A stretch of DNA of 9,959 nt from NCBI GenBank assembly GCA_054661495.1, contig BAAFSQ010000340.1, positions 1 to 9,959 on the forward strand. Direction: 5' to 3'. The translations under genes were made by a program, and so were the position numbers. Under the pieces are notes generated by a model that saw only the letters and a program-made list of their open reading frames with translations, had not been told where the DNA came from and made no database searches. Each line of letters begins with the position of its first letter. Positions within the stretch are counted from its first letter, which is position 1. The DNA is from Zygophlyctis sp. KS116 (lineage: Eukaryota > Fungi > Chytridiomycota). This document shows positions 1,247-8,602 of this stretch, one piece after another.

Positions 1247-1463
1247 AAACGCGACAAAAAATGGGCGCGAAATCCGTTTTCTTATCTCAATTACGTCATT
1301 ATTGAATTTTGACCAATCATATTTAATTAAATATTCCGAAATTTGAAAGTTGAGAATTGAAAAAGAAAATTTATCGTGAGAGTTGAACTTACGTCATGAG
1401 AAATTTTTTCGGTCCGTTAGGCTCTCTTATTAATTTGCAACAAAATTTGCGCGGGACGCGAAA
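1247..1463. promoter_or_regulatory. Putative promoter of the DUF3987-like gene with E2F/MCB/SCB-like, CRE-like and CCAAT motifs
   Basis: GCGCGAAA at 1265-1272 (TTTCGCGC on minus), TTTGCGCG at 1446-1453, ACGCGAAA at 1456-1463, TTACGTCAT at 1291-1299 and 1389-1397, CCAAT at 1313-1317. All lie in AT-rich DNA directly upstream of the ATG. Confidence 0.4.
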
Positions 1464-1549
1464 TTCTCCGAACTCAAAGACTGGCTGCCAAATCAGTGGC
1501 ATTTTGGATCTTGGTCAAAGTTGTCCGATTTAGGACTTTGATAGCTCAT

Positions 1550-2878
1550 TTTAAAGATCACAAAAAGCTGGAAAACATACTAAAAACTCAGAAGTAGATT
1601 ATGACAATTGGATGCGCTAGAGCAGGTTAAACAAGGAAATTTCAACATGACTTCAAATGAGTTTATCTTCTAAACGCGCTATGCGATTCTCGCTCGGGTG
1701 ATCCACCTGATCAATACTCAGCTTCTATTGAATCTAAACTACCCCGTTACATAACAAATGCCTTACCTCAAACTCGTATTGCAGAAATAATCGTCAGTTT
1801 TCCTCAAATCGTAGCACCAAAAGTATGGATCGGCATGATCACCAGCCTGATTCATACGGTCGTTCCCAGGATCGGCGTCCCAACAGTTCAAGTCTCTGAG
1901 TGGTTAAGTCACAAAATTATCACTCACGCACCGTCAAACTCCCCCTACAATTCGCCATTATTAGTAGTACCCAAAAAAGGGAAAGCTCAGCGGGTTTGTA
2001 TTGACCCCCGGCCTACATCGGTGGCTGGATTCAATTATGTTTTGGTTCGTGTGGACGTACTCACTAGATTTATAATTCTTCGACCGTTACATTCAAAATA
2101 AGCTTCTGAAGTAGCGCAGCAGTTGTTCTGTATCTGGTCCGATATTGGTTCCCTAAGATAATCCAGTCATATAACGGTGGTGAATTTGTAAATGCCATAC
2201 TCAAGGAACTCACCTCCAACCTAGCCATTGATCACCGACTCAAGACTCCCTACATTCCTAGATCGGAAGGTTTAGGAGAATCGGCAGTTAGGAGTTTCAA
2301 ATCTGTTTTCGTCAAACTAATATTTAGTGAATACTCTAGATGGGAACAATTCCTCCCTTATATTCAATATTTTCTCAACTAAAAAATTCGCGCCGTACAT
2401 GGATCTACGGCATTTTCTCTCATGTTCTCCAGAAATGCTAATCCTTTCACAAATTATTCTAGTGTTCGCCAGGAACCACTATCACCTGTTGCGTTGCGCA
2501 CCCGTCTCGCACATATTCAGTCTGTACTTTTGCTATTTCTGACGAACTCAAGAAATCTCAACAGACAATGCAATGGTAAATGTGTTAAATTCTAATCAAA
2601 AAATTCTAGACCAACCATTTCGTAACGGATCGTATGTCATGTGAATTGATAAAACCCGCTCCAGTACTCTGCAACCTCGCTATGAAGAACCCTTTAAAGT
2701 TAGGAGACGCACAGCCGGTGGATCTTATGTATTACTAGATTCAACAGGTGCCCTTCTGTCTCGTAATTCTCCCCATGATCACCTAAAAGTATCTCTTTTT
2801 CCCCTGATTCCGATTCACAGTCGTATGAGGTTCAAGCGATCCTGAATCATCGTGGCACACCCAATTCTCGTGAGTATT
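1550..2878 (+). mobile_element. Degenerate, internally deleted Ty3/Gypsy retrotransposon with chromodomain (gag-like remnant, RT N-terminus, integrase, chromodomain)
   Basis: RT N-terminus WLSHKIITHAPSNSPYNSPLLVVPKKGKAQRVCIDPR is fused to integrase PTSVAGFNYVLVRVDVLTRFIILRPL...PKIIQSYNGGEFVN...DHRLKTPYIPRSEG. This is followed by a GPY/F-like LQPRYEEPFKV and chromodomain start SYEVQAILNHRG. Stops and frameshifts are present; the left boundary is approximate. Confidence 0.88.
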
Positions 2879-2929
2879 CAGCTCAATTAAAATACTCAAA
2901 ACTTAGTATTGTATTTTTGTGTATGTTTT

Positions 2930-4066
2930 ACATTGAGAAGAGTCTGATGCCAAATTCTTTACAGTAAATTTAATCATGTTTAGTAGTTGGTGGTAGTTTT
3001 TCTTGCCTTATAATTACCATCCATTGACCAGTGGACGCCAAAAATTAGGGTTAGATTTCCAGCCCTTACGAGCTCAGTTTTTGGAACTATATGAATTGTT
3101 TGTTGATTGATTTGGAACTCGTTATTAGGCTGATCTTCATTAGTTAGCATTTTAGATTTTGTTGCATTGAGTGACATTTTATGTGATTTTAAAAATAATT
3201 TAATATCCTCAAGCATCTCCTGAAGAACTTGGTTTTTAAGGGAAATTCGATGAATATCATCCGCATAAGCGAGTACTGAGATGTTTATTGTATTGTTTAA
3301 TTTATTTCCTATTTTGCTTTGTAAATGTGTTAAGATTTCATCGTAAAAAATATTCCATAAAAAAGGAGACATTGGATCGATCGCCTTGAAACAGTCCTCT
3401 TTCAGCTGAAAAAATTTGCGTTCGTCCGGCTGGTGATTCAGTAACCCTAATTTTTCTAACCTGATTTATAAAGTGACTAGAGACTTTAATTCACTTGCGA
3501 GATTGTTCTATACTTTGAAAGGGAACTGAGTCGTATGCTTTTTGGACATCGAGCGATTCCATGTAAAGGTTGTTTTTGGGTTTCTAACCCTTTTGGCGTC
3601 GTCGATCAATAGTCTTATGATCATTATTAGATCTTTTGTACTCATATCTTTTGTAAATCCAAAATTGTTTCCTTTCAGAACAGTATTATTATTTATTATT
3701 TTAGTGATTCTAATAGAAGTAATTGACTAAATAATTTTTTAAACGTATCTATCAGTGGAAATGGTCTGGTTTTGGATAAGTCGCCATCAAATGATCCGAT
3801 TTAGGAATTAGAATTATCTTAGCAATGTTGAAATATCCGGAAGTTGTTCTTCTGCTAACATTAAGTTTAACAGTTGAAGTAATTTTATTTGAAATTTGTG
3901 ATAAGCCTGGAGTTTTATTTCTTCTTAATTGTTTAATAGACTCTTGCATTTCTGGAATTGAGAATTCATCCGAAATATGATTGTATAGATTGTGATCAAT
4001 ATCAGAGATAAATTCCTTTTTCTATGTGATCTGTTGTTCATTTTCACTATATATTATTTTAAAATA
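2930..4066 (-). mobile_element. Degenerate non-LTR (LINE) reverse transcriptase fragment
   Basis: Motifs in order on minus: NKTPGLSQISN, AKIILIPK, NFGFTKDMST, DVQKAYDSV, RGLFQGD/PMSPFLWNIFYD, VLAYADDI, LNATKS, FGVHW. Several frameshifts and internal deletions. Confidence 0.92.
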
Positions 4067-4083
4067 ACCCTAAGACTTAAAAT

Positions 4084-4160
4084 CTGATGTGTTAGTTTCT
4101 TTTTAATCAACTTTATTACCTGATGTGCCAGCTTCTTTTTAATCAACTAGGACACATCAG
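4084..4160. repeat. 29-bp imperfect direct repeat plus short inverted copy
   Basis: ctgatgtgttagtttctttttaatcaact (4084-4112) versus ctgatgtgccagcttctttttaatcaact (4120-4148), 3 mismatches. acacatcag (4152-4160) is the reverse complement of 4084-4092. Confidence 0.8.
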
Positions 4161-4285
4161 TGTGGCGCATGCCTTTGTATTAATGAGAAAGTCTAATTTT
4201 AACTCTCCCCCTGACTTTGGAATGCATATAATCCAAATCCTTTCATCATGGTACTTAGCTTATGACCAGGAACACCTTTGGTCAC
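4160..4285 (-). mobile_element. Probable Copia 3' remnant (RNase H C-terminus, polypurine tract and LTR start)
   Basis: Minus frame TKGVPGHKLSTMMKGFGL resembles the Copia (AD..)TK...GL terminus. It is followed by AGGGGGAG (4212-4205), a typical PPT. Confidence 0.5.
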
Positions 4286-4326
4286 TTGAAGCCCTTTTAT
4301 GATCCTTTAGTAAGAGCTACGCAAGC

Positions 4327-4632
4327 CTAATTATCTTCATAAAGTTTGATTTTTCCTTGAGATTTTCTTTTTTGGGGTAGGTCAAAATTTAATGTTAGTT
4401 TTATGGGATGATGATGTAGTCTTTGCTCTATTTTATAGAGAATTGATATGTCGTTTGTCTCTTTTAAATACACCATGTTCTTCAATAGGAACATACACCG
4501 AGTCCCAATATTTGAACTTGATCTTTTATCCATTGATCTTGATATCATGAATACCAATCTAAGAAATTCGCGCTCATTAAAGATATTTTCCTTGAGACAC
4601 AAATAGAAAGGAGCAAAATCATTAGCCTTCAA
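4327..4632 (-). other. Unassigned 101-aa ORF
   Basis: Open frame only, with a non-ATG start and no recognisable motif. May be spurious. Confidence 0.15.
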
Positions 4633-4833
4633 TTTCGGAGAAATATTATTTAGGTTTCTTAGACTTAAATGTCAGTACATAGATTAACCCTATTAATTCT
4701 ACTTTTGTTGATGAAGGATTTTGTGAGTCTACTATAATTGATTGTTTATGTATTATATTTTCTTGATTGTCCCGCATTAGAAATCCTGCACCCATCTCAT
4801 TGGATTCTCAAATTACTCAGATTAAGATAAAAC

Positions 4834-5034
4834 ATGATTTTCTTATGGGAGCAGGTGAGATTAAGTATAACTTATAACTAGCAGAGACCATTTGAGAATA
4901 ATTTACATCCTCACCCAAGAATTAAGGCAGTAAAGACATTTCTTGATAGACTCACTATTGCTCATGCTATTGAAAAAGACGAATGGTTAGAAGACAGAGG
5001 AATTGATACGGACGGGTACACGGTATCCAATTTA
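4834..5034 (+). pseudogene. Unidentified coding fragment, probably spliced, truncated at a telomere-type tract
   Basis: Candidate 27-nt GTGAG...TAG intron at 4855-4881, then an open frame QRPFENNLHPHPRIKAVKTFLDRL...EWLEDRGIDTDGYTVSNLR that runs into AGGGTTAGGGTTAGG. Family not recognised. Confidence 0.3.
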
Positions 5035-5049
5035 AGGGTTAGGGTTAGG
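5035..5049 (+). repeat. Interstitial telomere-type repeat (AGGGTT)2.5
   Basis: agggttagggttagg at the junction between two unrelated fragments. Confidence 0.85.
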
Positions 5050-5088
5050 CAGTAGGTTCAGGTTTTGTAACAAAACCTGAACCTACTG
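5050..5088. repeat. Perfect 19-bp-arm palindrome (fold-back)
   Basis: cagtaggttcaggttttgt-a-acaaaacctgaacctactg. The right arm is in frame with Copia pol (TKPEPTDTPF...MYRS). Confidence 0.95.
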
Positions 5089-5789
5089 ATACACCATTTA
5101 CAAATAATACAATGTATCGATCAATAATAGGATGTCTACTGCATATATCAAGACAAACACGTCCAGACATTTTATATGCAGTAAACGTGCTATCATCGCA
5201 TTTAGTTAATCCTATGCAACGACATTGGTGTGCTGCGAAACGAATTCTTATATACTTATATCATACAAGACTTGAATCTTTAAGAATTGGTCCATCGAAT
5301 CACAAAGGGTTATCTGCATACTCGGATGCCACCTGGGCTGATGACCCAGATACTCGTCTGTCACGAACAGGGGGAGTAATTTTTTACAATGGTTCATTTA
5401 TCTCTGCACATTCTCATCAACAGCGATCTATCTCACTCTCAGCAACACAAGCTGAATATCAAGCACTTTCAAGTGCAGTACAAGAAATCTTATATTTTAG
5501 GACCTTACTACAAGAGATAGGATACAGTGAAAATATTCCAACACCTTTGATGTGTGATAATCAAGGTGCATTATATCTCGCCATTTCAACAAAGAATCAC
5601 CCTAAAATTAAACACATAGCCATTAGGTATCATTTTATACGAGATGCTATTCACAAAGATGAAGTTAAACTCGTATACGTTCCCACTCAAAATCAAATTG
5701 CAGACATGTTCACCAAACCTCTTCCTCCCAATCTTTTTCATAAATTCAAAAAAGAAATCGGAGTACATGCATGGAATTTAAGAATTTAA
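5070..5789 (+). mobile_element. Ty1/Copia pol 3' fragment (RT C-terminus and RNase H), open frame, 5'-truncated
   Basis: YRSIIGCLLHISRQTRPDILYAV, HWCAAKRILIYL, YSDATWA, SRTGG, SLSATQAEYQA, CDNQGA, KHIAIRYHFIRD, QIADMFTKPL. Confidence 0.96.
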
Positions 5790-5829
5790 CCGCGTTGAAT
5801 TTTCCGGACATATTCACGCGTGATTTGTT

Positions 5830-5992
5830 GGATAGGGGGAGTGACAGAATCTGATCAATTCTGATCATATTCCTATGATATCCAACAACCTCTATTCATA
5901 TTCTATAATTAGAAATACTATTTTTAGGTACCTGCCTTAAATACGGCAGTTCTATAAATAAATACATCTCATTTTTATTTAAAAATCTATCA
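5830..5992 (+). mobile_element. Copia polypurine tract (5830-5841) and putative 151-bp 3' LTR (5842-5992)
   Basis: GGATAGGGGGAG is followed by TGACAGA...TCTATCA (TG..CA ends, 6/7 terminal inverted repeat). Overlapping TATAAATA and AATAAA lie at 5953-5962. Confidence 0.65.
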
Positions 5993-6009
5993 CTTACTAT
6001 AGATACCAC

Positions 6010-6134
6010 TTTCCACGTTTAAAGATATCGCCAATTGGTTTTTGACTCTTCAAAACCAAGCCGAGATTCATGAGTCTCGTGCAGATTTTTTGACTTCAAA
6101 AGCCCTCCTAGCGAGAGGTCAAACGACCAGAGGA
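6010..6134 (+). mobile_element. Possible Copia gag-like fragment
   Basis: Open frame STFKDIANWFLTLQNQAEIHESRADFLTSKALLARGQTTRG resembles the gag region before the zinc knuckle. Weak similarity only. Confidence 0.3.
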
Positions 6135-6138
6135 AACC

Positions 6139-7078
6139 CTAAGTGTGTTCTACTATTACTCTTGCTTTAGAAAATTCTAAATTAAATAATGCATTTTCTG
6201 GAACTTCTGCAGCAGGATTTCTATAAGGAGTAAGCGTGTGCTTGCTAGCTGCATACCCTGAGTCTCCTAGTAGGTGTTCATTAGGGCTTAAATACATATG
6301 AGGGCGCAAAAAAAGTGTGGTTTGGCTGAAAGCTGTTTGATCGAATATAGACCCTGGCCAGTCCACTTGATAATATAGTATCCTTCTATTGAAATCACAG
6401 ACTATTTGCGCATTTAAAGAATATCGGCATTTACGAGTCCAAAAAACTTCCCCATCTATTGCAGGCTTCTGGCTTAAATTAATATGTGTTACATCAATAA
6501 TTGCCACTGCATTTGGTAGATTGTATTTTGGTTTGAGTCAGGCCACTTTATGAACTCTTTTTCAATGACAACATGGCTGTCAAAAATCTGTAAATAAACT
6601 AATTTTAAAAGAATACCTCTTCATATATAGAGTAACTGTCCCATTGCCCACGCCAGCCGATCTGGCAATCTTTCCAACAGCAGCCCCGTTCCTATCAGAG
6701 CCTAGCTTTTCTAGAGCGACCAATGCTTGAATCCAACAATCTCTTTGAGTACGTCTACTGTTGTTTACAAAAACTGGATTAGTCGCAATCTTCGAGACTA
6801 TAAATTGGAATGTGTCTCTATTAACTCTTACAATCTGTTTAAACTCTCTTTCTGAATACTCCCATAGTAAATTTCGCAACTGGACTGTCTTTGGAACATG
6901 GGTTTTGGAAGACATAAATCTGGTAATATTATTTGTATGCTTTGTACCTAGTCGATAGCAAAAGGGCCTGATATTCTAAAAACTCATCAGCTAATTTATC
7001 ATCATAATTAACAGCTGCGAGGAGTACTATGTTCTGAAATTGATTCTTAAGTTGTTGGCGATTTGAAATTCTTGGCAT
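6139..7078 (-). pseudogene. PIF/Harbinger (HARBI1-like, DDE_Tnp_4) transposase, spliced, frameshifted and 3'-truncated
   Basis: ATG at 7078 (MPRISNRQ); introns 6947-6920 and 6616-6588. Motifs FKQIVRVNRDTF, GVGNGTV, IKWP, IIDVTHI, YSLNAQIVCD, WPGSIFD, LLGDSGY, LTPY, FNLEFSKARVIVEHT. Indels near 6520-6565. Confidence 0.92.
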
Positions 7079-7174
7079 AAAAGGCGCGTTTTAGACCCGT
7101 TTCAAATTTCGCAAACTAACCCACATTTTAATTTATTTCCATATTAAAAGCGCTTTATTTTTTCGCGTTTTTTT

Positions 7175-7191
7175 CATATTTGAAACCCCCT
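7175..7191 (-). mobile_element. Possible Harbinger 5' terminus/TIR
   Basis: Minus strand AGGGGGTTTCAAAATAT directly abuts the Crypton-like coding fragment. The partner TIR is absent, so this is unconfirmed. Confidence 0.3.
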
Positions 7192-7193
7192 AT

Positions 7194-8345
7194 AGAAATA
7201 TTGAATTGTGCCCTGTTAGGGCTCTTGCATTGCATTTACTTCATCGTTTTCACATCCAGAAAGAAAAACGACCGGAATTCGCAGACCGCTCTCTATGGTA
7301 GAACAGAATGATATTAAAGGTAAGGTAAGCATTATGAGTATTTAGATTATAGGGACATGGTCTACAAGAAAAAAAATATGAAAAGCAGAGAGAATATATT
7401 CTTAAAGGTTACAAAGCCTTTGACGTAAATTGTAACAAGTAGGTTTCATAATAAACTATTAGGTAAGTCATGTTGGGAGAGCACGTGGAGCCATAGATTT
7501 AGCTCATGCAGGTGTTTCTCAATCAGCAATTGAACGAATGGGGTTTTGGGGTCTAGATGCTTTGAATGGTTCATATTTGAGTAAAGTTCTACCAGTGGAG
7601 TGTCTCCACGTTTTGGCAGGCTATTCAAAAGACGAGCCCTATTTTTTACACAGAAGTGTCATCCAGCCACCGCAGGAGCTGCAGAATGAGATTTCCCCCT
7701 GGATAAATGAGTTGGAGAAAGAATGTAAAACTAGTATTGAACAAAACTTATTGAACAAAACGGTACAGAATACTCAGGTTAGCACAATTTTTTTACACAC
7801 TAAGGCCTTGGACTAATAAAACTACTCAGGTTTCTTAGGATACCTAAGAACAAGAAAAACCTATATTGGCATTTGGATGTCTTCAAACTGGCCGTGTTCA
7901 AGTCTGAGATATTTAAAGCGTTTGCAAGGACTCTAGGAGGTGGTATGGAGGAAGCTCGAATCCCTAGGAGCGAATTACTAGAAAGGGTTAAACCCACACA
8001 ATTTATAAATAGGCAGTTCCAGCACTTAAACAAAGGGTTAGGGTTAGGATGAAATTCAACAAATTATGCTGGCTCAGGAGGATACTCCAATTGTAAAACT
8101 CGGCTCTTACGACGTAATTCGAACAGTCAGGGATGTTTGGGCGGAGTGGAAGGAACCATGGGATGGACATCCGTCGATTAAAGAGTTGATTAATCAGTAC
8201 GGGTACAGTTGGCGAGTGAAAAGTGCTGCAGAAAAAAAACTGTTTTCAAGAAGGAAGTTTTTGCGGATTTAGAAGAGGAGAGACGCGGACAAGCACTAGC
8301 CACATGGATTGACGACCGAAGAAAGCGTCAGAGTACTGATTCATA
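7194..8345 (+). mobile_element. Crypton (CryptonF-like) tyrosine recombinase remnant with NDC10_II-like region and GCR1_C domain, pseudogenised
   Basis: RNIELCPVRALALHLLHRFH, SHVGRARGA (HxxR), ERMGFWGLDALNGSYL (catalytic Tyr region), YFLHRSVIQPPQEL; GCR1_C-like TVRDVWAEWKEPWDGHPSIKELINQYGYSWR...FSRRK. Introns 7320-7352, ~7439-7462 and 7778-7804. N-terminus missing. Confidence 0.88.
8034..8048 (+). repeat. Interstitial telomere-type repeat (AGGGTT)2.5 inside the Crypton coding frame
   Basis: agggttagggttagg. Removing 8041-8047 restores the reading frame. Confidence 0.85.
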
Positions 8346-8602
8346 AAGAACTATTCATAAAAAAATAAAAAAAATCGATTGATTGAATGATTTTTAATTT
8401 AGGAAATATCATGTTGTGTTGATTGAGTTTGTTTTTTTGTTTTATCATGCAAAAATTCTACGGTGATTGGCTGGAAAGTATCTGCAAATTTATCCTATGG
8501 TGACTCAAAAGTATTTGGTAAACATATCTTTCAGTCACATGACTCCGCGGAAATTTTGTTAGTCTCGAGTCACGAAATTTGTGTGTAAAAAAAATAATTG
8601 GG

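Follow-up and report, generated by a model that had tools for sequence, protein, structure and literature searches.

Short telomere-phase tracts at breakpoints of transposable elements in the chytrid Zygophlyctis sp. KS116

Telomeric tracts in a mosaic of transposable elements

Contig BAAFSQ010000340.1 (C340) of Zygophlyctis sp. KS116 was analysed over its whole length of 9,959 nt, referred to here as the window; the assembly comprises 12.7 Mb in 1175 contigs. The window contains a DUF3987 gene and pieces of transposable elements (TEs) of the Crypton, chromodomain gypsy, copia, Harbinger and long interspersed nuclear element (LINE) types, and short tracts in phase with the telomeric hexamer TTAGGG lie within and between several of these pieces (Table 1). 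The TE set and the very short introns of the TERT gene fit an early-diverging fungus; searches with Ku80 and TERT did not settle its taxonomic placement.

The original prediction listed six telomere-phase tracts (3045, 3584, 4065, 5035, 6135 and 8034), all of which were found in place; two others, at 3442 and 4685, had been overlooked. Against an order-4 Markov model, five tracts of at least 9 nt compare with 1.4 expected and two of 15 nt with 0.003, while 7-mers in telomere phase show no enrichment in the window. The caution attached to the prediction was that single 8–9-mers could arise by chance and the 15-mers hardly so; the 8-mers are near chance. Its claim that each tract coincides with a lesion holds for all eight, including the two that had been missed. 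In comparisons with sister or related copies, which are paralogous copies and not orthologous alleles, five of the six listed tracts mark lesions where the other copies lack a tract. The tract at 5035 stands at the capture point of a copia piece in a Crypton intron.

Table 1. Features of the window (RT, reverse transcriptase; LTR, long terminal repeat; MITE, miniature inverted-repeat transposable element)
Feature	Position	Strand	Remarks
DUF3987 gene	1–1430	−	One of at least 12 family copies; this one lacks a tract
Non-coding repeat, 256 bp	1433–1688		Many copies 82–99% alike, often at contig ends; MITE-like
Rearranged gypsy piece	1690–2900		Integrase, chromodomain; several junctions
Degraded LINE RT copy	2907–4066	−	Holds four tracts and several tract-free lesions
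Telomeric tract, 10 nt	3045–3054	+	Absent from the C107 and C649 copies; 1 nt in register with flank
Telomeric tract, 9 nt	3442–3450	−	Deletion-insertion versus C107: about 18 bp of LINE lost, with about 7 bp in their place; 2 nt in register
Deletion-insertion versus C107	3578–3591	−	12 bp replace 4 bp; 8-nt tract at 3584–3591
Telomeric tract, 9 nt	4065–4073	−	Junction: LINE homology stops at 4066, homology to a C413 repeat begins at 4075
Telomeric tract, 8 nt	4685–4692	−	Left boundary of another LINE piece; 4 nt in register with C649 flank
Crypton (NDC10_II, GCR1_C)	4844–5033, 5988–6135, 7192–8400 (within 4844–8400)	+	One collinear copy in three pieces
Telomeric tract, 15 nt	5035–5049	+	On broken intron end of Crypton; left junction of copia piece
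Perfect 19-bp hairpin	5050–5088		Natural 8-bp palindrome at copia break plus 11 nt
Ty1/copia 3' piece	5061–5987	+	End of RT, RNase H, polypurine tract (5833–5841), part of LTR
Telomeric tract, 8 nt	6135–6142	−	Crypton/Harbinger deletion junction
PIF/Harbinger element (DDE_Tnp_4)	6143–7191	−	Cut off at the 6135 tract; opposite end near 7191
Telomeric tract, 15 nt	8034–8048	+	Crypton frame; 2 nt in register 5', 1 nt shared 3'

The LINE piece was aligned from 3000 to 4066 with an open-frame copy on C107 and with C649. Relative to both, positions 3046–3063 constitute an 18-bp in-frame insertion in the RT frame, of which the tract forms the first half; the source of the last 9 nt, a non-telomeric filler (3055–3063), was searched for and not found. 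At 3578–3591, the left end of the lesion also shows a short in-register extension on the plus strand, giving a miniature head-to-head pair. Other lesions in the LINE piece carry no tract, namely deletions of 38 bp and 197 bp, a 4-bp duplication and losses of single bases. Short natural palindromes lie at two breakpoints (4054–4067 and 5061–5077).

In the Crypton copy, an intron of 25–26 nt is broken at 5033, and about 940 bp from the 3' end of a copia element were captured there. This fragment (5050–5987) arrived by capture and not by normal transposition. The hairpin records a copia end that was folded back, with 11 nt of fold-back synthesis before joining. The deletion at 6135 took away about 120 bp of the Crypton together with the distal end of the Harbinger transposase; in an intact relative the transposase frame runs on where the tract stands, and the deletion is later than the arrival of the Harbinger element. 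At 8034, comparison with C149 reveals 12 bp, made up of two exact repeats, in place of 4 bp. An identical 16-mer at 5034 and 8033 had also been reported. The identity is real; at 8033 the first three letters and the last belong to the flank. These flank letters account for the identity, so that a copied 16-bp cassette was rejected, and the match is convergent.

Enrichment, breakpoints and independent samples

Outside the window, tracts were counted in 154 kb of TE-rich loci picked regardless of the motif, with nine further hexamer classes of equal composition as controls. Tracts of at least 9 nt numbered 28 (1–10 in the controls), those of at least 10 nt 16 (0–2) and those of at least 12 nt eight (0–1). 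The longest measured 20 nt, and none reached four repeats. The density corresponds to approximately one excess tract of 8–20 nt in every 6 kb of TE-rich DNA; the window is a hot spot relative to the sampled loci.

The tracts are closely associated with breakpoints. Outside one repeat family, described below, an indel or the end of homology was found at 18 of 18 informative tracts of at least 8 nt, compared with 17 of 43 controls (p=6e-6); with six family-borne tracts counted as conserved, the association gives p=0.01. When only tracts outside the window are considered, all 11 informative ones are at breakpoints (p=3e-4), and in these 11 cases the sister copies hold ordinary sequence at the homologous position. 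Viewed from the breakpoints, a tract of at least 8 nt was present at 11 of 332 sites, compared with 0–4 for the controls; in this total a single event may be entered twice, and a good number of the alignment ends are simply normal TE termini. The tract share of about 3–7% of visible breakpoints is a lower bound, shorter additions being invisible.

The distribution across the assembly is uneven. One telomere-phase 10-mer, with TTAG at its end, has 110 occurrences in the whole assembly. Four of them, at C23:19709, C43:51685, C64:32122 and C70:29199, are in contigs C1–C96 (about 5.5 Mb) and 106 in the remaining 7.2 Mb or so. This amounts to 0.7 and about 15 per Mb, respectively, a bias of approximately 20-fold for which the lengths of C1–C96 were interpolated. 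The bias is real, but selection and break frequency predict it too. Promoter telo-box motifs were rejected as an identity for the tracts, which are nearly absent from gene-rich contigs.

In the repeat family mentioned above (L017, L020, L021, L023 and L064, on C380, C471, C590, C760 and C137), a 12-nt telomere-phase motif is fixed. The family has a conserved AT-rich stretch after the motif and short inverted repeats, and in two copies arrays of 21–23 bp tandem repeats precede the motif. It recalls non-autonomous Helitron-like elements.

Contigs assembled from three runs (X1–X3) belonging to three studies span the tracts unchanged, a comparison made on assembled contigs and not on raw or long reads. 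The runs that hold the window are freshwater samples. Contigs of X1 span 3045, 3442, 4065, 5035 with its hairpin, 6135 and 8034; those of X2 and X3 span most of these, and 3584 is bridged in X2, X3 and X4. The sample contigs differ from the window elsewhere, and the tracts are therefore common to a polymorphic population. The three main runs diverge from the window in different blocks (3200–3430 and 6785–7640) that match sister copies, which suggests gene conversion between TE copies or mosaic assembly. A metagenome scan with the LINE piece gave no match, and one with copia gave distant, tract-free matches only. Contigs from other samples with close TE relatives amount to 20 kb in all, which is too little to test for spread to relatives. 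One TE-mosaic contig from another sample (L110), in which the species may differ, has tracts of 9 and 10 nt at 3559 and 4959.

The original prediction had set the tracts against their absence from an intact DUF3987-like gene. The window copy is indeed free of them, but five other copies of the family carry tracts within or at the edge of homology. Members, including those on C704, C513, C431, C167 and C379, are 64–99% alike and have a common end near 1423–1432; the family is probably an unclassified mobile element. The window gene may well be intact, and its stops are located in intron-like segments of 27–30 nt. With at least 12 copies, five others of which have tracts, it is unusable as a host-gene control. 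The gypsy piece contains no telomeric tract over 6 nt.

Origin of the tracts

Three properties of the tracts resemble those of a telomerase product. In most resolved cases, 1–4 nt of the flank are in register on the 5' side of the G-rich strand, as expected of priming; the sample is small and the sister copies are 80–99% alike. A preferred register is also apparent. The TTAG-ending 10-mer exceeds a GGG-starting 10-mer by 110 to 39 genome-wide, a ratio of 2.8 compared with 1.03–1.18 under a phase-blind model. The former fits a single pass over a short template, whereas the latter must cross the template boundary. By hand count of the 74 matches listed, 50 have the first T as their exact start and 62 stop at TTAG or a single base further on, a class to which the repeat family contributes in part; of the 19 tracts left after exclusion of selected and family loci, 16 terminate at TTA, TTAG or TAGG (p=0.009). 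Finally, paired tracts share one polarity, G-rich then C-rich and never the reverse, with ten head-to-head pairs (about eight independent) and no tail-to-tail pair. Some of the short partners may be chance matches. Such a polarity is what extension of either or both 3' ends of a break would produce. Clear head-to-head double tracts, 2–3 nt apart, were noted at L025 (94–124, on C826) and L029 (C720:2157–2176).

The joins themselves bear marks of end joining: deletion-insertions at 3442, 3584 and 8034, the filler at 3055–3063 and the fold-back at 5050. The TERT gene lies on C66 with RT motifs A, B', C and E intact, and genes for Ku70 and Ku80 are present in the assembly. DNA polymerase theta (Pol theta) was not clearly found; the sole family A polymerase match (C49:21033–21779) is weak, at 48.8 bits, and could be Pol gamma or Pol theta. 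Because of the short introns and the incomplete assembly, loss of Pol theta is not proven. In another chytrid, B. dendrobatidis, the telomere consists of the same hexamer (PMC11797018). Judging from this species, TERT and the scars, the host telomere would have this repeat too.

The tracts are derived, lie at breakpoints, are biased in register and polarity, and occur in several samples. They probably arose when telomerase abortively extended double-strand breaks that were then closed by end joining. At a break in the TE-rich compartment, telomerase could anneal by 0–4 nt to the exposed 3' end, copying its template once or twice (mostly 7–15 nt), with addition usually ending at or beside TTAG. 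The extended end would not be matured to a telomere and would instead be ligated to a partner end. Small deletions, filler, fold-back synthesis or captured fragments would accompany the joining, or telomerase would extend the partner end as well. We infer that telomerase made the tracts, on a template near 5'-CUAACCCUAA-3', and that joining was Ku-dependent. The original prediction held that breaks here are often extended by telomerase and then religated. Extension and rejoining are well supported because of the breakpoint association, priming, register and polarity and the presence of TERT and Ku; 'often' is an overstatement in view of the 11 tract-bearing sites among 332.

Several points weigh against a telomerase origin. 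The telomerase RNA was not found, and the assembly has no terminal repeat array that would confirm the host telomere repeat. The 183 kb used for the breakpoint statistics were gathered by homology to the window, the p-values for register are modest after removal of the selected loci, and the repeat family with the motif as a fixed part inflates the counts. Genome-wide, the 110 occurrences of the TTAG-ending 10-mer barely exceed the 96 of its reversed control, so that the case needs the data on compartment, length and breakpoints; for the GGG-starting 10-mer the corresponding figures are 39 and 48. The reversed-pattern control is uninformative, since few words of that composition are commoner than the reversed ones.

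A repair polymerase could also have switched template onto telomeric DNA, existing tracts or telomeric RNA, generating the insertions without telomerase. Other templated scars do occur at the junctions, such as the fold-back at 5050–5088, the captured copia piece and duplications of 14 bp and 4 bp, and the TE-rich contigs may be subtelomeric and hence near telomeric donors. Copying from an array, however, predicts no preferred phase and either polarity, which is not what the register ratio and the head-to-head pairs show, and the lack of any tract of at least four repeats likewise argues against it; an origin of this kind seems improbable. Pre-existing motifs at which breaks occur, whether long-standing components of repeat elements or remnants of former chromosome ends, would account for the family with the fixed motif, and there is a precedent in Magnaporthe, in which broken interstitial telomeres were internalized by end joining (PMC7367193). 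The sister copies nevertheless hold ordinary sequence, both in the window and in the 11 cases outside it, and several tracts lie within one collinear reading frame with both flanks retained, leaving only a very faint likelihood for this explanation. The chance that the tracts are fortuitous matches or products of amplification or assembly is close to negligible. The 8-mers are near chance within one window and hairpins are typical of whole-genome amplification, but the enrichment over nine controls speaks against coincidence, and an amplification or assembly artefact was rejected because contigs of three runs, from three studies, have the same junctions and the same hairpin.

The original prediction went further and proposed a defence directed at TEs, in which the host would cut the elements and telomerase-assisted joining would inactivate or scramble them. 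The strong compartment bias, and the presence of tracts in every TE class of the window except gypsy, would be expected of such a system. Indel purging in gene-dense DNA gives the same bias without targeting, however, and the DUF3987 gene put forward as a control belongs to a repeat family in which other copies are scarred. Most TE lesions are free of tracts, including those of the whole gypsy piece. Tracts are found in introns (as at 5035) and non-coding pieces in addition to reading frames, the insertion at 3045 is in frame, and there is no preference for site or family. The proposal thus received no positive support and is highly unlikely. Most likely, telomerase leaks onto breaks and its products are kept where indels are tolerated, with no targeted system. 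A broader role, in which telomerase would be a regular partner of end joining in this lineage, a filler polymerase that supplies short overhangs in repeat-rich chromatin and so drives the shredding and shuffling of TEs, is a tentative proposal and rather unlikely; telomerase might possibly fill this role in place of Pol theta.

Relation to known telomeric insertions

Short interstitial telomeric sequences (ITSs) inserted at repaired breaks are known from mammals (Nergadze et al., 2007, PMC2246262; Santagostino et al., 2020, PMC7215372), and telomerase together with end joining has been proposed for their origin (PMC2246262, PMC7215372). The tracts described here are similar in their one-step insertion at a break, in the deletions or extra filler at the flanks and in their occurrence inside repetitive elements. 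In-register priming is also comparable, at 1–8 nt in mammals (PMC2246262) and 1–4 nt in most resolved cases here. The human genome has 229 loci of at least four repeats, compared with tracts of one to three repeats here; the thresholds differ and the densities are not directly comparable. The classical ITS length of at least four units is not reached by any tract in this material. Unlike mammalian ITSs, the tracts have a measurable template register, form two-ended head-to-head scars and join unrelated fragments.

In human cells, telomerase-dependent telomeric insertion and neotelomere formation occur at breaks (PMC5388398; bioRxiv 10.1101/2022.10.31.514589), and a short telomerase product that remains unprotected is predicted to be end-joined as an interstitial insertion (bioRxiv 10.1101/2022.10.31.514589). 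Those events are somatic, experimental or pathological, and are held down by MLH1 and checkpoint signalling, whereas the tracts described here are inherited and occur across wild samples.

Fragment capture and fold-back at end-joined breaks are familiar from Ty1 cDNA capture in yeast and from Pol theta-type snap-back insertions. Both the copia fragment captured in the Crypton intron and its hairpin resemble such events, but are combined here with telomeric addition on the host end.

Among fungi, the MoTeR relics of Magnaporthe (PMC7367193) likewise have telomere repeats bordering broken, internalized TE pieces. MoTeRs are targeted to telomeres and take the repeats from the target, whereas here LINE, copia, Crypton, Harbinger and DUF3987 sequences are hit internally. 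A telomere-targeted retroelement of the MoTeR or TRAS/SART type was rejected for the tracts, which are internal and copy-specific. A site of telomere–telomere fusion was also rejected, the head-to-head pairs being only one to three repeats long and lying inside TE sequence. No fungal or protist report of such short telomeric fillers was found in the open-access literature, the Magnaporthe relic being the closest, and their density is probably unusual among genomes.

The tracts are real, inherited and spread through the repeat compartment, and represent a variant of an established mechanism. On the prevailing view telomerase is excluded from internal breaks, and its role in ITS formation has so far been based on a few hundred long vertebrate loci. 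A 12.7-Mb genome with about a hundred tracts of at least 10 nt, and more that are shorter, would preserve, in heritable form, the traces of single passes of telomerase at breaks. The rate at which telomerase engages breaks, the points at which it starts and stops on its template, and how joining outcompetes telomere healing could all be counted here, and the scars predict the template of the telomerase RNA.

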